A DNA stretch of 64,000 nucleotides from Oopsacas minuta (Eukaryota > Animalia > Porifera): NCBI GenBank assembly GCA_024704765.1, contig JAKMXF010000311.1, positions 358,426 through 422,425 on the forward strand, read 5' to 3'. This document shows positions 38,804 to 54,138 of this stretch, in pieces (positions within the stretch are counted from its first letter, which is position 1; each line of letters begins with the position of its first letter). Under the pieces are notes generated by a model. It worked only from the letters and a program-made list of their open reading frames with translations, ran no database searches and was not told where the DNA came from. A program made the position numbers and the translations under genes.

Positions 38804-39694
38804 TTAACTTGTAGATACTCCTAATCCCATAGGTTGTAATGAATCTCTAGGAACTGTTCCTTTACGGGGGCAAAGTTGTGGATTGTTCGAATCAACCTCT
38901 TTTCTAGCATGATACCTCCAAGCCGAGGAAATGAAACTCACAGGGATGTATTTTTTCACTTCGTTCTCTTTCTCAACTAGTGAAAGGTATTCCTGATCCA
39001 ATAGCGGGAACCTCACATGACTTATTACTCTCTCTACTGTATCTCCTAATGATTTATTACTGGCTAATGCGTTAACGCCAGCCCATTCCTTGACTCTACT
39101 TAGAATCTCCACCTCGTCGATATTCAGTAGATCTGATTGCAGAATGAATGCTAGTGCTTCGTCTGAGATTTCTCTAAAAGCGCTGGTCTTGAAAACTTCC
39201 TCCGTCTTAACTTCAATGTATTCCAGACATTCAGCTTGCAAATCAACTTGCTCGTACATAAGGGCTGCTTGTACATATTCACATACAGTGTCTACGCTCA
39301 TGCTTTCCCGCATAAATTGTACACAAATCCGTCTCAATCCGTCTAATCCAAACTCTATAGCAGCTCTAAGTACTTCGGATACAAATTCAGAACTAAGTTT
39401 ACAGCTGTTTGTGTAAATGAATTCTAGAACCGATAAGAAGATAGGTGGGGAAATATCAGAGAGTACCAGTGGAGTATTGGGGTCCTCTCCCTCGCTGGGT
39501 GGGACAGAGAGCATAGCACGAAATACAGCACATCTGGCAGCTAGCATAGATCTATGTGAACACATTATACGACGCTCATCTCCCACTAAAAATTTAATAT
39601 CACTCCATTCCTCATCATCTATCATTTTACTCATTTCCTGTGCAAATGCATCAGGATCACCGTATAAGGTTTTCTCTTTCATTAAGCGGGACAT
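38804..39694 (-). CDS. BTBD19: BTB/POZ-BACK domain protein 19
   Basis: WSDIKFLVGDERR..SHRSMLAARC, FLSVLEFIYTNS, BACK domain, and C-terminal AWRYHA...CPRKGTVPR like BTBD19. Confidence 0.85.
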   Translation of the reverse strand: MSRLMKEKTLYGDPDAFAQEMSKMIDDEEWSDIKFLVGDERRIMCSHRSMLAARCAVFRAMLSVPPSEGEDPNTPLVLSDISPPIFLSVLEFIYTNSCKLSSEFVSEVLRAAIEFGLDGLRRICVQFMRESMSVDTVCEYVQAALMYEQVDLQAECLEYIEVKTEEVFKTSAFREISDEALAFILQSDLLNIDEVEILSRVKEWAGVNALASNKSLGDTVERVISHVRFPLLDQEYLSLVEKENEVKKYIPVSFISSAWRYHARKEVDSNNPQLCPRKGTVPRDSLQPMGLGVSTS

Positions 39695-40118
39695 CGTTAT
39701 ATCGTGAATGCAAATAGTTTAGTGAATCTATATTTGTTTGTGAATAATATTTATACTCATCGCCATTGGACTATAGTGCAGATTTGTACAAATAAATCTG
39801 ATTGGATTAAATATTTCATACAAATACATTAGCAGAATGCAGTAACTTATCTCAATATGTATAAAGTTAACTCAGGACCCTCGTTTCATTTCGATAAGCG
39901 GAGTAAAATCAAATACTTGCTAGCAATTCGGGGTAAAGAATAACTTCGTCATTACGGGAGTTTACTGTAACTAAATATTACACGATGGTATGGGCAATAT
40001 AATTGGCCAACATATATCAGGGTCCTATGATATAGATCTTGCTTTAGCATTTTAGCAAAATTATTGTTATGCAAATCCATTGTATCTCTGTAAGCAATAA
40101 AGTACATTCTTGCAACAG

Positions 40119-41529
40119 TCAGTCCATCAGTTTTCCATCGCAAAATGGATCATCAGATTCATGTGAGAATCTACACATTCCGCTATAGTAACCATGTCCT
40201 GATACTTCTACTATTATTCCATTCTTCCCTGCTCCAATAGACTCCTCTTTAACTGCTTGAGCTATGAATTTACCTCCTGAAGGTCCTGTGAACATTCTCT
40301 GTTGTCCAAGCTTGAGATTGTGTTTGTAGAATTGTATGGCAATTCTTGCTGTAGTCCCTGAACCACAGGGACTTCGATCAACCTATTAATTAATTATATT
40401 AAAGATTGTTGCATTGGAGTCATATAGCGTAACCTCCACAAACAGAAACGGAGTTTCAAGCACACCGATATATGCTAAATCGGGTCCTTCTCCCGATTCT
40501 ACCAATTCCCCATTGGTGGAGGCTCACTGTATTATTGTTCTATTAAACTAACTTGAGCATCTCCAAATACAACAAAATTATTACATATTTCTTCAGTATT
40601 ATCATTTTCATCGATAAGAATTGTTCCGTATAGAAATGCAAGATCTGAGTCAGTATGCTGTAACTTAATTGTCTTTCTTAGTAATTCAGTGAGGCTAGCA
40701 GCTGCAGACCTCAAGGCCTCATACCCTGAGGTTTTTAGATCTAAGCCGAACTGAGTAACTAAAGCTACAGCATAGAAAGCACCACCATATGCAATATCGT
40801 AGTGTATAACGCCATAGCCTGGTAACTCTATTTGTGAATCTTGTGAGAAGATATATGATGGCACAGAGATGAAGCGAGCTCTGCCAGACTTTCCTTCTGA
40901 ATACTCCACAAATACAGTTACGAGGCCACAAGGACATTGTATGTTAACTTTAGTCTCAGGAGCTACTGCCGGAACTATACCGTAATCTATAGCATAGCGG
41001 CCTAGAGCTATAACAGCATGCCCACACATTGTAGAATATCCTGTAAATAACCATGGATTATAGCCTATAGAATATATCTTGAGAGAGCTACAATTTTGCC
41101 TCAACCACTTTGCATGGTAATATCTTGAAAACTATAGGTCAATTTTGTATGCGCAAAATGGCAAAAATGTAGGTTCGAGCGTCATCTTCCTGAAAAATTA
41201 TGTCCCGGAACAATTCGTCATACCACAACTACACTGAACAGGGCATTAAACAAACCTTCATTATGCATGAATAGTACTGCCATATCTGCATTGGGCAGAT
41301 CAGGCTTAACAGGAATAACTCCGTACATTGCACGACTACCTCTTGGCTCACAGATAAGTCTTGTTCTCAAATGATCCAGGTGCTTAGTCACAAATTGTCT
41401 TTTCTCTAATATTGTGGTACCCTCAATATTTGGATATCCGGATTGTATAATGCGTACAGGTTCAAGGCAAGTGTGCATTTCTAATGTCTCTAAAATATCC
41501 TGTCCTATCAGCTGTGCTCCACTAGCCAT
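40119..41529 (-). CDS. L3HYPDH: Proline racemase / trans-3-hydroxy-L-proline dehydratase family enzyme (copy A); exons 41529-41256, 41040-40553, 40382-40119; 341 aa
   Basis: EMHT..EPVRII, EPRG, YSTMCGH, DIAYGGAFYA, LYGTILID, VDRSPCGSGTTAR; canonical phase-compatible junctions. Confidence 0.9.
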
Positions 41530-42635
41530 GCTAACAAACTGTTAATTGATTGGGAACACATTTATATGCAATTGTTCAATTGACCACAATTAAAATATTC
41601 TCAGTACATAAATAGATCCATATGATTGAGTAATACATTCTAATCGGAAGATACTATTTGGTGACATTTGGCTAAAGCAAAACAGACCAGACTTTGTTGT
41701 AAAAAGCAAATTATGAAGTTTCAGACCACAATATCGCCACAAAACCTACACAGTTTAAGAATAGAATATGTAACTATTGAACCAACAGAAAGTAATAATA
41801 GCTGCAACATCTTATTGTGATAATCTGGGTAAAATTAGACTAGAAATAGTAATGATCATATTACAAAGTGAAAGTATAGATTATATTCAGCAAATTCGCC
41901 AGATGTTTGACTACGTAACTCGTGCGAAGCAATAAAGATCTTCTGTCATGCATTAAACCATGTAATATTGTAATTATCTTATTTTCAAATGGTACAGATG
42001 GTTCTGGTGGTTGAATATGAAACTGTTAATAATAACTCTAATATTTTGAATGTATTTATTTCCTTATTAATTCCTTTCAAGTTTGAATTATAATATAGTA
42101 GAAAGTATTTAATGTTTGCATTAAGAGGGTCAAGCAAATATAGAAATCTCCCATAGCGATATCATATATCCGAAAATGCAAGATATCGATAAATATCGCG
42201 ATTTTGTTTGTAAATATCAAAAATATCGAAAAATGGAGAAATATGTGACAAATGTTCCTTGTATGCAAATACGTAACTATCCAAACTTGAATGCAAGATA
42301 TTATACGTAAAATCCACAATAATGAAGTTCTTGTATATTTCCTTAGAACTTGAATTCTTATATGAATTATTCTAATCAATAAAATTACTGTCTCAATGTA
42401 GCCACAAATATATCTAGTGGAGCATTTGAATATACATATTTGTCATTGCGGGCAAGAAAGTCATACAGAAACAATAAACAAATCAACATAGCGCATTACA
42501 TGGAAAAGAAAAGATAATTAAATATTGGATAATATACAATCTGTTGGGGCATGCAGGAAGTATGCTAACTTGAGCTAGCAAATAAATTAATGCAAGGAAA
42601 TTGCAGTGCAACTCGGAAGCTTTGGATGTTAGCGA

Positions 42636-44412
42636 TTATTTAAGCAGCAGTCCGTTTGGCAGCGTGTCTTCTTTCTCTATTCTAAACGTGTGTTCTCCTG
42701 TGTAAAAGCTCTGGCCAGAGACCTCAACTACAATTCCATGTCTTTCTCCTCGCTTCTCTTCTCTTAGAGCCCGTCCTGTGAAAAATCCGCCAGACGGCCC
42801 GCTGAAAGTTCGAAGATCTCCGAGTTGTATAAAACCTTTGTAGTACTGAAGTGCTATGCGAGCTGTAACGCCGCTACCACAAGGACCACGAGCTATCTAC
42901 AAATGAGATTAATTTAAATTCAGGTCAATTAATTACAGTGAAACCTCCACAAACTGGGACTTTGTCAGAAATGGGGTAGGACTATTTGCCAGGGCCGTTT
43001 AAGTCCTCAATCAACCCCTGGTATAAATGGGAGAATGGTATCACTAACTACACTATACTTACTTGTCCATCTGCCAATACACAAATATTAGCGGATACTT
43101 CTTCAGGATTCCTATCATTATCATCTATCAGAATAACTCCAGCTAGAACTCCGAGTTCTGGGCACTCTGTATGTTCTATCATAACAGTTCTCCTCAGAGC
43201 TTCTGTTAGTATTACTCCAGCAGCTGACAGACTCTGTGTAGTAGAGTCTTGCAAATTTAGTTTGAATTGACTTACATTTGCAATTGCATAATAAGTTCCA
43301 CCGTATGCAATATCGTAATTAATCCATCCGTAGTGGTCGAGGTGTATTTCATGATCTTTTGTGTAGACGAATGCTGGTACTGAGTGGAATCTGACTCTAC
43401 CAGATTTTCCATTCGAATACTCCACGAATACTTTCACAACTCCACAAGGACATTGTATCTTAACTTTAGTTTCTGGTGCCTGTGGTTTTACGAGCTTGTG
43501 GTCTAGCGCATATCTTCCAAGGGAAATTATACAATGTCCACACATTGTTACATAACCTAGATATGAAAAGGATATCACATATCACAGATTAAGCATTGCA
43601 AATAGAGTCAACTCCAGTCATATAGAAACTCAAAGGACAAGGATAATATAAGCGAATATAACCAGCGAAACGTATGTTTGGGACCATATTTGTACAATTT
43701 CAGACCTCAAAATAAGCAGATATTTCGATATAACTGGAGTTGAGTGTATTTTGCTATCACTTGTAAAGTCAACCATACAACACTACAATTTAGATTTGTT
43801 AGCCACAAATTATTCAACTTTGGAATTTGCATTTTTAGATTCTAAGGACTGATTTTGTCTGCATTCCGTAAATAATTAATTATATTTTAGTTGGTTAGCT
43901 CAGGCTGAGTTTATTGTGGGATTAAGCGGAAAGTATTTTATGTGGATTTTAATTATTTGTAACAGCAATTTTGTAAATAAGTAAAACATATATCAAAGCT
44001 CATTAATTATTTGATTATCCTATTAATTAGCTCATTAAGTACTCAATTAATTATTAACGAATGAAAATTTATTTGTACTACAAGGTTGATTCAAACTAAC
44101 CAGAACTGTTCATGAATAGAGCTGCTATGTCGGCTTCAGGGACATCCGGTGTAACGGGTAGTACCCCAAACATGTCTTTATGTCCTCTTGGCTCTAACAT
44201 AAGTCTCATACGGAGAGAATCTAAATGGCCCCTCGCATATTTTCTCTTTTCTAGGATTGTATTGCCAGTTATGCTCGGATATCCTGCTGTCACTATTCTT
44301 ACTGGATCGCCACATGTATGCATGTCTATTGTAGATATAGAACAGCTGATATCTGTGTTTGTTATAGGGCTGTTGGTAGTAGTAGTGGGGCAAATCTTTT
44401 TTGAGGGAGCAT
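42636..44412 (-). CDS. L3HYPDH: Proline racemase-family domain (copy B), C-terminal part of the fusion
   Basis: TIDMHTCGDPVRIV, EPRGHKDMFG, YVTMCGH, DIAYGGTYYA, IARGPCGSGVTAR. The third exon (42896-42636) is absent from the ORF track. Confidence 0.92.
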
Positions 44413-47400
44413 CTGGAGAGATAATGTTATGTTGAAATACAGTGGAGTTCGCCAATTTGTAATATTCGCCTAAATAGCAAGTACTCACCTAATTGTGCAA
44501 GATTTTCGGAAGAAGAAGATAGAGATCGTTTCTGAGAATCACTTCTATTATGTGTATGCGAATTATCCAATTCTTGTGAATCATTGTTTGTATGAGGAAT
44601 TTCACGTTTCATACAATGGTATAAACTTAAATTCTGTCTGTGTGAGTTATTGTTAATATGTTCAGGTCTTATAAACTGGGGCGGAACTTCTGACTTTAGC
44701 TGGTAAGGTATAGGACTAGCTTTAATAGGAAAATTTTGTATCGGGTAAGGGAGTGTGGGTGTGTTAGGCATTACTAGACTTATGGCATGATATGGGTGAG
44801 CTGGTGATGTTATAGCAGGGCTGGAGAGAGTTTGTTTATAGTTTGTTGATGGAATATCCAAGTGCATACCATTTGCATGCTAAATAATTACAGTTATGAT
44901 AAATAGCAACGTAAAATTGGTTTCAATTGATCTACTGGGGTAAGAAAATACGAATTTTGCACTTTCAAGCTTCTCATATGCAAATTGATTTTGTTTTTAT
45001 GTTTATTGGAACTTGATAACTTACCTTTGGAGTAGATGGAGTAGAAGTAATGGAATAAGATGTAGCAGGGTTAAGCTTTTTCTTAGGATTTGTAGATTGT
45101 ATATTAGGAATTAGGAGAGATAATGGTACATCATGGTTAGCATCAAGTCTGTGTAGACCTGGTGTAGACGGAGAAGGGAGGAGAGGATTAATCTTAGAAT
45201 TTGAAGGATCGAATGTGATTGGAGTTAATGGAGAGAGATGTGAGCTAGCTACACCGCTAGGCATTACTAGATAACTTCTGTTGAATAGAGATGGACTGCT
45301 GGGGGTTATTTCTCCCTGAGAACTTTCAAAAGCATTGAGATTTGTTAGTTTCTAAATGCAATGATAGTTAGAATCAATACATTTGAAATTTGAATATTTG
45401 GAAAGTATTCATTGTTTATGCTGGGATTTTCGAAATATACAGGGAAAAAGTTTGCATATTTCTGTGTGCATTTTCCCAAATAATAGCTTGAAGTTGCAAG
45501 GAAATCTTTTGAAAAAAGTTTAGTAAATGTGTGATAGAAACATAAATAATCTTGTTTCAGAACTTACAGTTGTAACAGACAGCTGGGATGATAAAGATTC
45601 AGACTGAGAGATAGGTCCTAGGGATTGTGAGTTAGTCATATAATGAGGCATTAAATCAGCAATAGAATCTTCATATACACAACTACTGAGCTCATCTGGT
45701 GTTTCTTGGTTAGACTTGGGGAATCCAGGTATTTGTGTGGGTACCTGTGGGTATTCCTTGGAGGGAGTCTCCCCGGCATTATCGGTCAGCTCGTATACCC
45801 TATGGCCTCTTATGTAGACGTCTTTACGTTCTTTAATTCCACGGACGGAGTACAGTGCGCATCTAAAAATTTTTGAGTAATTAGAAACCTAACATGCTAC
45901 AATACATTTGTACTTTGAGATCATGAAACGTAAGGAGTGGAATAAAATCTGTATGTTTATAATTGAATTAGAATACTTATATTGGATTACCATGTGATTA
46001 TATTAGAAAGGAAATATACGAATATTACAAGGAATTGAGTTATTGAAGTTTACTGTTTACAAAGGGGCTGAATTGTTTAAAATCAAAGGTATAACTAATT
46101 TCTATTCAAGTTTCTGTAAATATACACAACATAAATGTTACATAATATGGAATATATTTTGAAGCCTTATTTCAATAGAAATATATTTTGTATAGAAAAT
46201 TACTGAATGAAAGAATTTGGAATTCATTGATTTTGCAGAAAAGAATTTAATATTTCTGAAATTATGATAACGATAGAGGGAATAATATTTGCAACTAATT
46301 TACCGAAAATTGAGTTTCCAGTTTATTGGATTGGCTTCACTCTTCCTATGTTTGCCAGAATAAGATGCCCATTCCTTGTACAAGGCAGCATCTTTATCCA
46401 TGCAATAGGTCTTCTCGCGTGCATGTTTCCAAGGCACAGAGAACAAAGTCTTTCCGTCTGTCAACCATTTAAGTCCCTCGTACTTTCCAGAATTTATTTG
46501 TTCTACTAACCACTTTTTGAGTCGTCGCTTACCTAAGAAAATTTGTAATAAATAGTTGCGTAATTTCTTTAATTCCCTGAATAATGTCAATTCAGAAAAT
46601 TTGCATAAAACATGGAATGTGTTTTAAAGTTTCAATATTCTTTGAAAATGAGGAAAGTGTCTAGTAGCATAAAGATAGAAATCTTGCATTGCGCAAGAAA
46701 TAATGAAATTATAATTAGAAGTATTGGATCAGGCTTTTAAGAAAATACTTTCAATAACAATTTGGTCTGAAAATACTGATTGTGATGCATTACCCATTCA
46801 CTTTCATACAATCTTGTTAATTGACAAACAAAGAGAAATGTTCAGTAATATTGCGAAAATTAGTATTTCATAAAAATATCATTCATCTAAGTTATTTGCC
46901 ACATGTAATCCTATGCAAACTGTACCTTTCGATAACTTTGAGACAAGAATAACAGATCTCATAAATTCGTAATTGCAATCTAATCTATCATAGTCATGAT
47001 AAATGATGTAACATAGCAACCATTCGGATTACACAGGTGTAATGCGTCTAATGTGAAAGTAACGACAATGCATTAATCATCGTGACTTGGTATAAGAAAG
47101 AATTTCAGTTTGGCTACTGTAACATTCCACAGATTGCTGTCATTCCTAAGAGACTACAATTCTCTAAGCAACGTATATCGTGCCAAGAATGCAGTATATC
47201 AGTGTACTCAAAAATTCAAATAGGATTTGGATTGTAATGAAACAACAAAAGACGGAATAAATAATCAAACCTGGAGTTTCAATATTTAGCTCTCCACCGA
47301 ACTCTCCATCAGAATAACTACTGTTAATCAAGTCTAATTCTTGACCGCCTGAGGGAGATTGTGAATCCTGTGTTAGCGGAGACATATTTCCCTTGTCAGA

Positions 47401-47809
47401 GCCTGAGTATACAGGGAGATGAGGTGATGGGGGAGTTATGTTGGTAGAACGATGGTGATTTTCATCCTGGAACATTTCTGGTTTAGTATCAACACAGATC
47501 TAAAGATAGCATTACGTAAATTGGAAATTGTTCAATTTATAGTACAGTGTATGCAGATTATAAGAACACCGGAAATAAGCACTCTAGGAAACCGGTCTTG
47601 ATATATTCCTGTATATTTTATGCCGGTTGTAAGAACATGTGTTGCTACTCCGAAGGTTGTACTCATAAACGACAAACGGCATCCTGTATATTATTGATGA
47701 ATATTATTCATAGGAAAGTTACCTTTTCGTCTTCGTTGTAGTCGGGGAGGATTGTGAGAGGATGAGGAGAAGAAGATTCTATTTCCTGAGATTCAGATGC
47801 CAATTCCAT
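42636..47809 (-). CDS. Predicted IRF-proline racemase(L3HYPDH-like) fusion protein, 9 exons, 874 aa
   Basis: Exons 47809-47723, 47499-47271, 46532-46304, 45862-45568, 45351-45025, 44879-44489, 44412-44101, 43556-43063, 42896-42636 total 2625 nt with no internal stop; all introns are GT-AG and phase-matched. Confidence 0.7.
45790..46532 (-). CDS. IRF: IRF DNA-binding domain (split by intron 46303-45863)
   Basis: RLKKWLVEQINSGKYEGLKW...FSVPWKHA...DAALYKEWA..SGKH...NPINWKLNFRCAL: all five IRF tryptophans are present; IRF4/8-like in style. Confidence 0.95.
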
Positions 47810-48993
47810 TGCAAACTAAATATTTACAAAACATTAATTCTAAAATTATAGAATTTCATAATAAGCAACTAGTTAATTGCAAATTCAAGCATTTATACAA
47901 ATAGAACAGTGAAATTGAAAGTAAAATAATATGAAAATAGGCTATATGTGTATTTCAGTGAATAACATTGCTATATTATTGTTACTAAGATGAGATCGTA
48001 AAAATAGAAAACTCACTTTATCCACATTTGCAAAGAAATTCCACTAATAATTGCCAGAGATTTGTGTTTCAGTTAGAAGAACCAATCGAATTGAAAGTAA
48101 TTGAAAGCCATTTTTCCAATTTCAGGTGGTTTTATACTCTTCAATCTCTACTACAACTCTCTGTACAATAGGAATGTTCAACTTTAGGCTCAACAACTGT
48201 TGCATATTTCTATATTATTTTCTATTGAATCTCTCTATTGATATGTGTTCTATGCTTGTTACACGTAGAAGAATTTCATAATAGCAGTTATATAACCAAA
48301 TCCATGACATTAAGTAAAGGAAGAAACCATTTTAAGTTGTCCTGAGTGAAGCAACAAAGGAGTGAAATCGAAATTCGCTTAGTTTAGCCATACCAATGAA
48401 GCCGGCGAGTTTATTTTGTGGGATTCTGCTATTCAGAAATTTCAAGATTTCTACAAAGTGTAATAATATCTGAGAAAAGCTTTGCTCTGCTTTCAAGTAT
48501 TTCTAAGATAATTATGAATCAATCAAATGCGAAGAATTCAGGATACTTGAACCTGGAAACTCATCAAGTGGAAATTGATTGTTCTCTGGAAACGGCTTCG
48601 AAAGTTGTCAACCTTGGACTGGAATGCATCTTATACTTTGATTCTCTTTCGTTTCCGAGTCTTGAGTTGCACAAAGAGGCAATAAATTGACCATATCGTA
48701 ACTCTAATGTTATTATCAACAAATTATAAACAAGATCCTACTGCTTAGTTATTAGATTCCAAACATTATAAGTGTAATTCCAATTATTGCAACCTTGAAT
48801 ATGTCATACAAGTAAATATTCAATTCCCATTATTTATAATGTTAGATTTAGATAATTATCACTCACACATTATTTACATAAAGCAAACCAAATATAAACT
48901 AGAAAACAAGAATAGATAGTCCTGAGTATCCTCAAAATTGTAAAAATATAATAAAATATGTATAATTACTCAGTGAACTTACCTATGGTAGAT

Positions 48994-51900
48994 CTAGGTA
49001 GTCGAATCAGATTGGGCTTTTACCACTGTTTCCTGATCTTTAGGGAGATTGCTAGCTTCAGAACTTTGTTCTTTATCGTTACTTGGCGGTTTCTGATTCA
49101 TTTCTGTAGTTTCTAAGGAAGTTCTTTTCGGTTTAGCTGGAGCTGTTGGCTTGGCCTTTACGGGCGGGGATTTATTACCTTCAATACTACTGGATAATTC
49201 CTTAGAATCTAATTGGTTAGTGACGTCATCATCTGCGTTAGCTTTTTCCTTTTTCGGCACTTCTTCAGCAACTTTCTCCTTCACTTCTTTAGCATCTGCA
49301 GAAACTGTGGTTGATTTTAACACTGGTTTATTTGCAGTAGGTTTAGGTCTGGTTGCAACCTGAGGCTTTGGTAAGATTGGTTTCTTAGAAACTGAGGGAG
49401 ATTTCCTAATATCATCTTGCCCTAAAAGCGCTGGAGTAATGGCACCAACAGATGTTTTTCTAGTCGGCTTTTCTTCTATAGGTTCCGGAGTTTTTTTTTG
49501 TGTTTTAGGAGAGGGCATAGTAGTTCTCCTCACTGCTATTGGTGGGGATAAGGTAGGGTTAGCAGTAGTAATATGCTCGCTTGTAATTATATTTTCTTCT
49601 GTATTATCGCTACTGGTTAGTTCTCCACTTGGGATAGGTGAGATTGTATCCTCCACTTTTTCTACTTTTGATTGCGCTGGTTTTTCAGTTATTTCTTTGC
49701 TCTCATCTCTATCAACAATTCCTGAACCGGAAATACTGTCATGTTTTGTAACAGTTCCTATATCTTCTAATTTGTCTTCAATTTCTGGTGCCGTTTCATT
49801 TGTTTCGGATTCTTTCGTTACAGGAGTTTCCTCTACCTTAGATTCTGGTAATAAGGTTGCTTCCTCCAACTTAGATTCAGTCAATTCAGTAGTCTGAATA
49901 GGTTTTTCGGGTTCTGGATTTGGAGATTTAGGCACTTCGTGTTTCTCTGGCGTGACATTGCTTTCTTCTATTTTGGCGGCTGGGGATTCCGAAATATCTT
50001 CTGTTTTGGTTCCTCGAGATACGGAGGTATCTTTTGTTTTCGCGCTTGGAGTTACAGGAGTATCTTCTGCTTTGGCGCTTGGAGTGACAGGAGTATCTTG
50101 TGCTTTGGCGCTTGGAGTGACAGGAGTATCTTGTGCTTTGGCGCTTGGAGTTGCAGGAGTATCTTCTGCTTTGGCGCTTGGAGTTGCAGGAGTATCTTCT
50201 GCTTTGGCGCTTGGAGTTGCAGGAGTATCTTCTGCTTTGGCGCTTGGAGTTTCAGGAGTATCTTCTGCTTTGGCGCTTGGAGTTAGGGCCGTATCTTCTG
50301 TTTTGGCGCTTGGAGTTACAGGAGTATCTTCTGCTTTAGCGCCTGGAGGAATACCCTCCAAGTTTGAACCAAATGATACAGTGTCTTCTTCCAAATTAGG
50401 AACAGGGGATTTAGGAGTATCTTTTAACTTTGAAGTTCCATCTTGAGTAGAGTCCAGAATTGTATCCAATTTATGTTTTGCAGCAACAGGAGGTTCATTG
50501 ATCTCTTCAGCAGGTTTTATAGCCTTGTTATCTGGTCTCTGCTTTGGTTTAGGCTTAGATGGAATTGGTTGAGAATCAGTTTTCCTTACAGTTTGACTTG
50601 AGACCGTTTTTTCCGGCAAATCTTCATCCATTATCGATTCTTGGAAAATGTTTTCGGAGGATTTTGTTGCTGCGAGCTTTGCTTTACCCAATCCACCCTG
50701 TAGTACAGAGGCTAAGCCCGGGCCCATACCAATCGGTACTTTCATTGCCTTCCGTGGAGAAGTTGGAGGAGCAACTTTTTTCTCTTCTGTGCCTTCAGGC
50801 TGCTTAGCTGACGAAGCTTGATCTGTCATTTCTAACTTTAATTGAGATCTATCTTTTACAACAGGTTCATCCTCAGCTTCTGGAACATTCTCGAATCCTG
50901 GAGCAGATGCATTACTTATCTCAGTGAATAAATCTATTTCTTCTTTTGCTATGTCTGGAGCAGTACGTTCTTTCCTACGTGGTGGCCGTCTTGGGGGACC
51001 TCTTGGTTTGGATTTATGCATATCTAAATCTGGCGCTTGTGCTGCTACTTTCGAAAGATCATCGAATGTTGTAATATCAGGTAATGAATCAGTCTCAACT
51101 TTCTTTAGAGAAGAACTTGAATCGTTTCGCTTTGCAGGCTTTGATTTCTTGTCTTTATCTTCTTTCTCTTTCTTACCTTTGAGAGAATTGATGAATTTTG
51201 GTTTTCCAAATCGTTTCCCATGTTTGGTGGCAGTTTCTTGGGTGGAATCAGCTGTTGCCCCCTCGCAAACATTTTGTATGTCTGACACATCACATGGTGC
51301 TGTAGTCTCAATTATTTTAGGAATTGGATCTGCAGAGATTTCTGAAGGTTGTGAATCGCTCTCTAAGTCATCTAAATCCTCTGATTTTGTGTCAATATTA
51401 AATTCTGGATTGAAAGTTGAATAGCTAACACGATGGCGTTTCATACTTACACTAAATGCTAGTTTAAGTCTGCTGGTTGTTCCTGACAGATTCCTGTCTG
51501 GACTTTTAGGGAATTCTGTAGTTTCTAAGTTAGAAACTTGCTGACACATTACGTCAATTTCTTTCACAACCAACTCGCATGTTTGCAAAATCAGTATTTC
51601 AACCATTTTCAAATTTCTTGCATTTACACTTGATGATAATCCACTAAGAAATACTGACAGAGTATCTTCAGTAAATATGTTCTGATTGTCTGAAGCTGGA
51701 AGGTTTTCCTTTAGTTCTTCGATCTTTTCCTTACTAATCACATCACCCAATGAATATTCCAACTTTTCTAACATATCAGCTATTATCTTGTCTCTATAAG
51801 TAAGGATTTGAGGTGATAAAGCTGTCTTTGATTGCTCATTTATTAGTTCTGAGAGGCGAAATGAAATTTCTTTTTCAAGTTTGTTTGAGTAGAAGTCCTC

Positions 51901-54138
51901 ACAAAGTGTAGTTACCAAACTAGCTTTGGCCTTTAAGTTATTTGCTTTTGAGATTATTTCTCTCCTTGATTCTGTTATATTTGAAATGTCGAAAAGATTG
52001 ATTTCTTCTTCTAATTCTACTATTTTCTTATCTAAAATAAGTTGTTGTTCTGCAATTAATAAATCTATTCGTTTCCGAATTCCCCCCAGAACTTGTTCAC
52101 GTTTTAAAGGTGATTGATTTCTTGTTAAGAGCCTGGAAATATTCGAGAGAGCAACCTCAACCTCCCGATCATTCTCCTTCTTTAACTTAACAATATCTCT
52201 AAAATGAATAGCCATTTCTTGGATAGTAAAATTGTTTTCTAGAGCAGCAGCTATTATATTCAAAGAACTGATGTTCGTTAAATTGTCATCAAATTCAATA
52301 GCTTCTAAAACGCAATTATTATTGATAAGTTTCGCAAGTTGTCTGAAGGAAGAAGGTCCCATTAGATTTCCAGATATTTCCAGCCTCTTCATATTGGTAT
52401 TCCTTATCAAACCACATAGAACATATGATATGTTATCGCCGAGTTTGCAATCATTCAGTTTTAGAGTTTCCAATTTACACTTTTTACTAGAATTTGATTC
52501 CTCAAGAACTTTAGCTGCTGCAGATTTATGCTTACGAATATTCCCTGAAATATCTAAATGTTTGATAGAAGTGTTTTTCAATAAAGTACCAATCACATCT
52601 TCAAAATCTGAATCCAAAGATGTGTAGCTTAGGTCCATAGAGTCGATACAAGTAATTTCTGATAGAATTGCCGCTATTTCCTTCAGTCCGCAATTCAAAT
52701 CATTTTGCGATAGATTCATTTGCAAAGAGAATATAGAAGTATTCTCCTTTAGACCTGCAAGTATTTGTAAAATAAGATCTGCAGATAGTTTACAGTTCGA
52801 AAGATTAACTTGCTTTAATCCGATCGCTGTTTGGAAGAATTGTTGCATTGCAGTGGATTTTGTTTGTACCTTTCCAATAGCAGGTTTACTGTTACCGGAA
52901 ATGTTGAGACAGGTTAAATGCATTGTACAACCACGTTGTAGTGCAGCGAATAACTGTTCGAATGGCATGTTAGTTGAGGCTAATGATAGTTCTTGGATTC
53001 TGTTATTTCCAGCTAGAAATGCTAAGAAAGCTTGCAAATCAGATGAAGAACTTGAAAAATGATTATTTGAGAGATCCAAAACTGTTAAAGTATTAGAGAT
53101 TTCTGAGTGTTTTATGAAATGCTTTGAAAAGTTTGCAAATGATTTGGATGAAACTCCTACTCCGCTAAGCTTTAATTCCCTCAAACCTAATGGGAAATGC
53201 TGGACAGATGAAGCGAGACTCTCAACGCCTTTCTCTTCAATAATCGTATCTGTCAGATCAACCTTTTCTAACACACAATTCTGATTAGTACCAAATCCTT
53301 GTGCAAACATCTTTTGCGCAATTTTATGATTCAATCCTGCGATTCCTCTCAAACTAAGAAAATGCAGGCTGCACGAATGTTTTGAAATATGAATTAATGC
53401 ATCGAAAGATTCTGAACACAATTTGATACCGTCAGCGCTGATACCTTCGAATCTTGGACAGAACTCCAGCATGCGTATCAGAGGAACAAAATCTCTTGTA
53501 GGGAAGTGGTCGAAATGGTTCAATGACAGAGTTCTAATACTGTGTGTTTGATATGTGTTTTCTAAATCCCATGCTATTTCGTCATGGAATGAAATGTCAA
53601 AGAAATCGCAGAGTAGAGCATAGACTTCAGAAACTGAACCGCCCTGCCAACCCTGAGAAACTCTGGCTACATTTTCATCTACAATTTCGTCCAATTTATC
53701 TTGCCTGCCTTCACCAGTAATCTTTACCTTGAGCCTTCTTTGCAGTGCAGCTTTACCAAGCGTTGAATGAAGTGGGGATAATATTGCAGCCAAAAGTTCT
53801 ACAAAAGATTCACTCTGTACTTCAAATTTTAATTGTTTGGCTTTGTCAGAATATGGATCGATATTATAGGCAAGAGTAAGTTTGTCATTTGTCGAGCTAG
53901 TTAGCTCACAAATTGCTAGCAAACTAATCGAGAGATCCAATTTGGGAGGTTTTCCTTGAATGTTTAGAATGTAGAGACGTTTACTGGATACACAAATTTT
54001 CTTTTTCTCTTTGGCATTTTTCTTTTCTCCTTCTCCAATTACTTCTTGCGTATAGAATATTCCTCTTTCCTTTGATCCCAATAATTTGAGTTCTGTGGAA
54101 GATACCAACTCGCTGAAATTGTAATCGGTTGAGGCCAT
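48994..54138 (-). CDS. CARMIL: CARMIL (LRRC16) capping-protein regulator, single exon, 1714 aa
   Basis: N-terminal PH-like domain, EIAWDLENTY linker, RI-like LRR array, LLTRNQSP, helical dimerisation domain, CPI-like LDMHKSKPRGPPRRPP, and Pro-rich tail with KPxxP motifs. Confidence 0.9.
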   Translation of the reverse strand: MASTDYNFSELVSSTELKLLGSKERGIFYTQEVIGEGEKKNAKEKKKICVSSKRLYILNIQGKPPKLDLSISLLAICELTSSTNDKLTLAYNIDPYSDKAKQLKFEVQSESFVELLAAILSPLHSTLGKAALQRRLKVKITGEGRQDKLDEIVDENVARVSQGWQGGSVSEVYALLCDFFDISFHDEIAWDLENTYQTHSIRTLSLNHFDHFPTRDFVPLIRMLEFCPRFEGISADGIKLCSESFDALIHISKHSCSLHFLSLRGIAGLNHKIAQKMFAQGFGTNQNCVLEKVDLTDTIIEEKGVESLASSVQHFPLGLRELKLSGVGVSSKSFANFSKHFIKHSEISNTLTVLDLSNNHFSSSSSDLQAFLAFLAGNNRIQELSLASTNMPFEQLFAALQRGCTMHLTCLNISGNSKPAIGKVQTKSTAMQQFFQTAIGLKQVNLSNCKLSADLILQILAGLKENTSIFSLQMNLSQNDLNCGLKEIAAILSEITCIDSMDLSYTSLDSDFEDVIGTLLKNTSIKHLDISGNIRKHKSAAAKVLEESNSSKKCKLETLKLNDCKLGDNISYVLCGLIRNTNMKRLEISGNLMGPSSFRQLAKLINNNCVLEAIEFDDNLTNISSLNIIAAALENNFTIQEMAIHFRDIVKLKKENDREVEVALSNISRLLTRNQSPLKREQVLGGIRKRIDLLIAEQQLILDKKIVELEEEINLFDISNITESRREIISKANNLKAKASLVTTLCEDFYSNKLEKEISFRLSELINEQSKTALSPQILTYRDKIIADMLEKLEYSLGDVISKEKIEELKENLPASDNQNIFTEDTLSVFLSGLSSSVNARNLKMVEILILQTCELVVKEIDVMCQQVSNLETTEFPKSPDRNLSGTTSRLKLAFSVSMKRHRVSYSTFNPEFNIDTKSEDLDDLESDSQPSEISADPIPKIIETTAPCDVSDIQNVCEGATADSTQETATKHGKRFGKPKFINSLKGKKEKEDKDKKSKPAKRNDSSSSLKKVETDSLPDITTFDDLSKVAAQAPDLDMHKSKPRGPPRRPPRRKERTAPDIAKEEIDLFTEISNASAPGFENVPEAEDEPVVKDRSQLKLEMTDQASSAKQPEGTEEKKVAPPTSPRKAMKVPIGMGPGLASVLQGGLGKAKLAATKSSENIFQESIMDEDLPEKTVSSQTVRKTDSQPIPSKPKPKQRPDNKAIKPAEEINEPPVAAKHKLDTILDSTQDGTSKLKDTPKSPVPNLEEDTVSFGSNLEGIPPGAKAEDTPVTPSAKTEDTALTPSAKAEDTPETPSAKAEDTPATPSAKAEDTPATPSAKAEDTPATPSAKAQDTPVTPSAKAQDTPVTPSAKAEDTPVTPSAKTKDTSVSRGTKTEDISESPAAKIEESNVTPEKHEVPKSPNPEPEKPIQTTELTESKLEEATLLPESKVEETPVTKESETNETAPEIEDKLEDIGTVTKHDSISGSGIVDRDESKEITEKPAQSKVEKVEDTISPIPSGELTSSDNTEENIITSEHITTANPTLSPPIAVRRTTMPSPKTQKKTPEPIEEKPTRKTSVGAITPALLGQDDIRKSPSVSKKPILPKPQVATRPKPTANKPVLKSTTVSADAKEVKEKVAEEVPKKEKANADDDVTNQLDSKELSSSIEGNKSPPVKAKPTAPAKPKRTSLETTEMNQKPPSNDKEQSSEASNLPKDQETVVKAQSDSTT
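50010..50345 (-). repeat. 33-bp coding tandem repeat (TPSAKAEDTPA/V, about 9 copies) in the CARMIL tail
   Basis: ggcgcttggagttgcaggagtatcttctgcttt units are visible. Confidence 0.95.

Follow-up and report, generated by a model that had tools for sequence, protein, structure and literature searches.

A probable fusion of an IRF DNA-binding domain with a proline-racemase-family domain in the sponge Oopsacas minuta

The 64,000-nt stretch of the Oopsacas minuta genome analysed here (contig JAKMXF010000311.1 of assembly GCA_024704765.1, positions 358,426 to 422,425; hereafter the window, whose own numbering is used throughout unless a locus handle is given) carries, on the minus strand between 42636 and 47809, what is probably a genuine and old chimeric gene. 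As predicted, a single mRNA would encode a protein of 874 amino acids (aa) that combines an IRF DNA-binding domain, a disordered linker rich in Ser, Pro and Thr, and a domain of the L3HYPDH/proline racemase superfamily (PRS). Judged from its sequence, this would be a new IRF variant, with an enzyme fold at the position of the IRF association domain (IAD). The fusion is favoured because the phase-1 junction between the two halves persists in four genomes even though synonymous divergence (dS) is saturated and the intron at the junction can no longer be aligned. A full-text literature search yielded no earlier description of an IRF joined to a proline-racemase domain.

Gene model and junction

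The nine minus-strand exons were assembled from the region 42400-48200. The spliced open reading frame (ORF) comprises 2625 nt, corresponding to 874 codons followed by TAA, and the rebuilt model agrees with the initial annotation in its lack of internal stops, its matching phases and its GT-AG borders. The eight introns, each GT..AG, measure 223, 738, 441, 216, 145, 76, 544 and 166 nt. Exons and linking intron are as follows:

47723..47809, minus strand: exon 1, start codon and acidic/Ser-rich N-terminus (aa 1-29)
47271..47499, minus strand: exon 2, acidic/Ser-rich (aa 30-105)
46304..46532, minus strand: exon 3, main part of the IRF DNA-binding domain with all five Trp (aa 106-181)
45568..45862, minus strand: exon 4, end of the IRF DNA-binding domain (CALYSVRGIKERKD..RVYEL) and start of the Ser/Pro-rich linker (aa 182-280)
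45025..45351, minus strand: exon 5, linker with no Pfam family (aa 281-389)
44489..44879, minus strand: exon 6, linker with no IAD (aa 390-519), ending in phase 1 with ..ENLAQL followed by G/gtgagt
44413..44488, minus strand: linking intron, 76 nt, GT..AG, with no ATG and no AATAAA
44101..44412, minus strand: exon 7, pre-domain spacer of 29 codons (with a conserved KK) and racemase N-terminus (IDMHTCGDPVRIV..EPRGH..)
43063..43556, minus strand: exon 8, racemase core with the first catalytic Cys (MCGH, Cys629)
42636..42896, minus strand: exon 9, racemase C-terminus with ARGPCGSG (Cys794) and stop codon

An acceptor (ag/tttgcaATGGAA) located 6 nt upstream of the exon 1 ATG is kept in all four genomes and implies an intron in the 5' untranslated region. 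For exon 5, a nearer acceptor at 45315, which would result in a product of 862 aa, was tried and rejected; the acceptor at 45351, and with it the 874-aa model, was chosen because the orthologues keep the 12 further codons (KLTNLNAFESSQ).

The linking intron was found exactly where it had been placed, from 44488 to 44413, with the borders TAG/gtgagt and ctctccag/AT. Exon 6 ends in phase 1 in all four genomes (G/gtgagt, G/gttagt, G/gtaggt and G/gtaggc) and exon 7 opens with AT or AA after the AG, giving a junction codon that reads GAT or GAA in each of them. The intron itself measures 76, 51, 141 and 570 nt in the four genomes and is unalignable; the longest version (L001:8410-8979) has grown by an insert with inverted-repeat ends. 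Because independent read assemblies of one sample cross the junction unbroken, in single pieces, it is not a misassembly.

The absence of a start codon proper to the racemase half, claimed from the outset, also stood: no in-frame ATG occurs from the TAG at 44491-44489 to the M of IDMHT, and the intron is ATG-free. An in-frame ATG ahead of MHT is conserved in none of the four fused copies. The 28-29 codons that lead from the acceptor to MHT contain no stop in any of them, differ in length by whole codons only and keep both KK and ISTV/ID, the chance of a stop-free spacer being ca. 0.1 per lineage given the base composition of the introns. In a close relative (run X5), a 3-nt deletion at 44379 shortens this spacer without changing the frame. 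Read into an unspliced intron, the IRF frame would meet a stop after 20 codons in the window and after 1, 2 and 22 codons in the other genomes, and the resulting tails are dissimilar. The window has no AATAAA here, and its read-through stop lies only 15 nt from the acceptor, too short a distance for a 3' untranslated region and a promoter.

Conservation of the two halves and of their surroundings

The search for orthologues that had been proposed with the initial annotation led to three syntenic loci, each with an intact fusion ORF. These loci (L001, L002 and L003) are contigs of other assemblies and were reached via ORF-fragment matches in protein searches, with exon 8 as query in an exhaustive search and exon 7 and IRF exon 3 as queries in word-indexed searches (one close match each). 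The order CARMIL-like ORF, IRF exons, racemase 1, racemase 2 and BTB/BACK is common to the window and the three loci, whose fusion ORFs of 867 (L001), 859 (L002) and 874 aa (L003) contain no stop and have GT-AG at every intron. In L001 and L003 exon 6 is split by an extra phase-1 intron (L001:7896-8229; L003:11073-11131) that is not found in the window or in L002.

Exon nucleotide identity between the window and these loci is 68-78%, and dS (Nei-Gojobori) exceeds 1 or is undefined for most genome pairs, which indicates deeply diverged species in which neutral positions have been overwritten. Being related by descent, the four genomes do not count as four independent trials. The ratio of non-synonymous to synonymous substitution rates (dN/dS) is 0.02 for the IRF DNA-binding domain, 0.06-0.10 for the linker, 0.2-0.48 for the exon 7 spacer and 0.05-0.10 for the racemase domain (326 codons). 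Both halves are under purifying selection, which is strong on the fused enzyme domain. Among the 12 exonic in-sample variants listed, eight are synonymous and four are not.

On the IRF side, exon 3 matches the Pfam family IRF (PF00605) with an E-value of 2.2e-22 and 79.8 bits (cutoff 27) over profile positions 1-74 of 105; the remainder is encoded by exon 4, which did not score separately. The exon 4 stretch is near-invariant across the four genomes. Compared with structures of the DNA-binding domains of IRF4, IRF2 and IRF10, exon 3 gives E-values of 1e-18 to 1e-19 (1.4e-19 for the IRF4 domain in PDB). The five Trp typical of the family, noted earlier, were recovered at residues 113, 128, 140, 160 and 177 and are invariant in the four genomes. 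The predicted protein thus resembles vertebrate IRF1-9 and invertebrate IRFs in its winged-helix DNA-binding domain with five spaced Trp, located on the N-terminal side, but differs from known IRFs in the ca. 105 acidic/Ser-rich residues that precede this domain, in having no detectable IAD1 or IAD2, and in carrying as C-terminal module a complete fold of the proline-racemase superfamily. The linker (residues 216-519, ca. 300 aa) contains 17% Ser and 12.5% Pro. Neither an IAD nor another Pfam family was detected beyond noise at E<=1 in exons 2, 4, 5 and 6 or in the linker exons of the orthologues; since there is no good profile for IAD2, its absence is less certain than that of IAD1.

The presence of a full proline-racemase domain, as initially described, is confirmed by the near-complete coverage of Pro_racemase (PF05544) in exons 7-9, which extends over profile positions 2-324 of 325 (2-76 in exon 7, E 2e-22; 79-240 in exon 8, E 4e-38; 244-324 in exon 9, E 9e-18). 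The nearest solved structure is 7qpo (exon 8, E 4e-35). The fused domain belongs to the animal L3HYPDH branch, and both catalytic Cys are kept: Cys629 (TMCGH) and Cys794 (PCGSG) are invariant in the four fused copies and align with the catalytic positions of 7qpo, 7pb3 and 6r76. The motif DRSP has been altered to ARGP, all four fused copies reading ARGPCGSG where the free-standing paralogue described below reads DRSPCGSG; the first residue of the motif is D in 178 of the 189 motifs of the family members retrieved. Because the Cys pair is kept and the change from Asp to Ala is fixed, the pocket is conserved yet remodelled, and the retention of both Cys suggests that it probably still binds a proline-like ligand.

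In passages of PMC4113996 and PMC10875296 (the latter quoting Visser 2012), a Cys/Cys pair is assigned to racemases and epimerases and a Cys/Thr pair to the dehydratase, and a passage quoted in PMC10875296 has human L3HYPDH turning from dehydratase to epimerase when its catalytic Thr is changed. In the fused domain the second residue is Cys, so that it falls outside the Cys/Thr type of L3HYPDH dehydratases. It shares with L3HYPDH-type enzymes the full-length domain, the C-terminal ..GxLLK and the first catalytic Cys (MCGH), and differs from them by Cys in place of Thr, by ARGPCGSG, by the transcription factor fused ahead of it and by the lack of a start codon of its own. Two divergent eukaryote-like proteins of the racemase family (P0003 and P0022) lack the first catalytic Cys; one of them shares ARGPCGSG with the fused copies, and one consists of two domains in tandem. 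The family thus includes, outside these loci, non-canonical members that are perhaps not catalytic.

The second racemase gene of the window lies ca. 1 kb downstream of the fused one and offers an unfused control next door:

40119..41529, minus strand: free-standing paralogue (copy 2), 3 exons, 341 aa, with its own ATG and DRSPCGSG

Copy 2 is 53% identical to the fused domain and has the same intron positions; unlike the start-less fused copy, it begins with MA[ST] in all four genomes. It has EPRGS..AMYG where the family has EPRGH..DMYG, a change that is kept in its orthologues and in a fifth genome (L004); together with the ARGP of the fused copies, this means that each paralogue has altered a different conserved motif. 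In a tree, the four fused domains form one clade (support 100/99), while copy 2 and the free-standing L004 gene, which lies in another neighbourhood with no IRF within 10 kb, form its sister clade (100/98), so that the duplication predates all these lineages. The first racemase exon of the L004 gene (L004:9170-11122) also has no in-frame ATG before MHT and is preceded, 16 codons upstream, by an acceptor-like site (tcacctcacag/AG). This pattern hints at a start-codon mini-exon further upstream in the racemase family, an arrangement that would have eased exon capture. As to the origin of the fusion, conservation suggests that of two old racemase paralogues one, located directly downstream of the IRF gene, lost its start and had its first coding exon captured as an internal exon. 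The locus would be a clean case of two genes joined through exon capture following a tandem duplication.

Upstream of the gene lies a further conserved element:

47810..48700, minus strand: non-coding upstream region of ca. 900 nt, with a mean column identity of 80% across the four genomes

Its counterparts are L001:2980-3895, L002:6300-7190 and L003:7270-8215. The region is more conserved than the coding exons, and its indels are not multiples of three. It contains two invariant GAAANNGAAA sites that resemble the interferon-stimulated response element (ISRE), one at 47911-47920 reading GAAATTGAAA and the other at 48364-48373 reading GAAATCGAAA, as well as further invariant blocks (AACTGAAA and GGAAACGAAAG) and two TATAAA-like boxes. 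An Rfam search over 39000-49500 gave no match. By its sequence, the region may act as promoter or enhancer, under the control of the gene's own product or of IRFs. The region upstream of copy 2 is unconserved (56% column identity), and for this reason the missing conserved promoter ahead of exon 7 proves nothing.

The neighbouring CARMIL-like gene (48994-54138, minus strand) is a single-exon ORF of 1714 aa that occupies the same position in the four genomes, with 1600-1730 aa across loci; weak matches of CARMIL/LRR type were obtained with its L002 orthologue, and AKAEDTPxTPS repeats follow one another near its C-terminus. High-copy repeats, probably small transposable elements, are located in introns 7, 1 and 8 of the IRF-racemase gene (43584-43772, 47553-47741 and 42828-43016, respectively). 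In all runs the word depth of these stretches is 3-50x that of their flanks, and loose ends are plentiful at 43676/43705-43717 and 47601/47618.

One gene or two

A number of points weigh against the fusion. All the sequencing runs that contain the locus, four of one sample and one of the close relative, are of genomic DNA, as seen from their flat depth and from contigs that run through introns (e.g. one covering 43726-48100). They show no spliced joint, and DNA would not be expected to contain one. Protein searches with exon 8, exon 7 and IRF exon 3 returned no transcript-derived protein across the junction. The window model guided the construction of the orthologous gene models. In L002 the linking intron holds an in-frame ATG 17 nt upstream of the acceptor, a possible start for a free-standing racemase; the M of MHT could in principle serve as start codon, and internal promoters yielding shorter isoforms are possible. 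The roles in dimerisation and ligand binding discussed below are pure inference, since they are drawn from known PRS enzymes and IRFs. Among the best 150 matches of the exhaustive search with exon 8, none exceeded 500 aa and none was an IRF fusion, the closest being ORF fragments called on genomic contigs; a metagenome scan with the exon 7 alignment found 80 loci, all of them intronless racemase genes and none with an IRF. A profile search with alignment A2 returned 8000 bacterial racemases, which says nothing on fusions. As a prediction from comparison, the fusion claimed initially is strongly supported by the ORF, the junction phase and the splice sites conserved in four deeply diverged genomes, by the purifying selection and by the lack of a conserved separate start for the racemase.

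The locus might instead hold two separate neighbouring genes, the IRF mRNA ending past exon 6 and racemase 1 being expressed from an internal promoter, with translation starting at the M of IDMHT or in an undetected upstream mini-exon. Runs that are genomic only at the junction would be compatible with such an arrangement, as would the in-frame ATG of the L002 intron, the prompt stops met upon intron retention in L002 and L003, and the L004 gene, whose ATG-less first racemase exon with its acceptor-like site indicates that a start-codon exon may be ancestral. We nevertheless consider it unlikely, as the donor occurs at an identical codon and in the same phase in four genomes with saturated dS, the window intron is ATG-free with 15 nt only between read-through stop and acceptor, and the start codon that is absent from all four fused copies is conserved in all four copies of the paralogue. 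The pre-domain codons also stay open and change by whole-codon indels, and a start at the M of MHT would remove the conserved first strand (ISTV/ID), which Pfam covers from position 2. Spliced-leader trans-splicing has been reported in glass sponges, and in an operon-like pair the acceptor at 44412 would take a spliced leader rather than exon 6. The proximity of the two genes on the same strand and the strength of the acceptor are circumstantial points for such a pair, which is nonetheless highly improbable: the first ATG after the acceptor in the window is out of frame and opens an ORF of 16 codons, no genome has an in-frame ATG between acceptor and MHT, the window offers neither AATAAA nor space for an intercistronic region, and the conserved cis donor in compatible phase would be left unexplained. 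Finally, the fused racemase could be regarded as a functionless, decaying duplicate whose exons are dragged in by read-through, as the alteration of the canonical DRSP to ARGP might suggest. This pseudogene-like reading was rejected on dN/dS, which is as low as 0.05-0.10 over 326 codons despite saturated dS, and on the absence of stops and frameshifts in all four genomes, where both Cys and ARGPCGSG are invariant; the selection data effectively refute it, and we give it next to no credence.

Possible function and significance

Under the preferred reading, that of a single chimeric gene, the mRNA would start upstream of 47809 and be spliced through the phase-1 intron 44488-44413, placing the PRS domain where other animal IRFs have their IAD. 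PRS enzymes act as obligate homodimers, with two lobes that close on the ligand. IRFs bind tandem GAAA repeats only as dimers, which normally form via the IAD. From what is known of both families, the most likely role of the enzyme fold is thus to stand in for the IAD in dimerisation or regulation. Ligand dependence, or an epimerase activity that persists in part, may come with its still-intact proline-type pocket. Where the linking intron stays in the mRNA, the product would be an isoform limited to the IRF half and ending at a stop 1-22 codons into the intron, so that the junction might act as a switch point.

A more specific proposal is that the racemase-like domain serves as a ligand sensor whose pocket is kept but whose catalysis is blunted by the change from Asp to Ala, so that a proline-type metabolite would control the IRF. 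Ligand binding would close the two lobes and thereby control dimerisation, nuclear entry or DNA binding, the candidate ligands being hydroxyproline from collagen turnover and D-proline or other D-amino acids from bacteria. We regard this proposal as tentative and rather doubtful. If it were true, a metabolite of microbial or matrix origin would act on innate-immune transcription directly, through a single protein, in an animal of an early-branching lineage, and the conserved ISRE-like sites in the gene's own promoter would add autoregulation. A functional analogue, with no homology, is found in bacterial PutA, a proline-utilisation enzyme fused to a ribbon-helix-helix DNA-binding domain: there too a DNA-binding domain and a proline-metabolising fold reside in one polypeptide, which suggests metabolite-linked control. 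In folds, domain order and kingdom the two are wholly unrelated, and ligand switching of the fusion described here would be speculative.

Antiviral and antibacterial responses of animals depend on IRFs as core transcription factors, and it is the C-terminal association domain that makes these factors responsive to signals. In the sponge Amphimedon, an IRF is the earliest regulator telling symbionts from foreign bacteria (PMC13372038), and human L3HYPDH is an interferon-stimulated, antiviral gene (PMC10875296). The latter represents the same enzyme family tied to the IRF/interferon axis, with the difference that human L3HYPDH is a separate gene that is transcriptionally induced, whereas in the gene described here the enzyme domain would be covalently joined to the IRF. 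Both observations fit the link proposed here between proline/hydroxyproline chemistry and immune gene control, a link that the fusion makes testable. An enzyme fold long conserved at the position of the IAD would be a second way in which the control or dimerisation of an IRF has been achieved.

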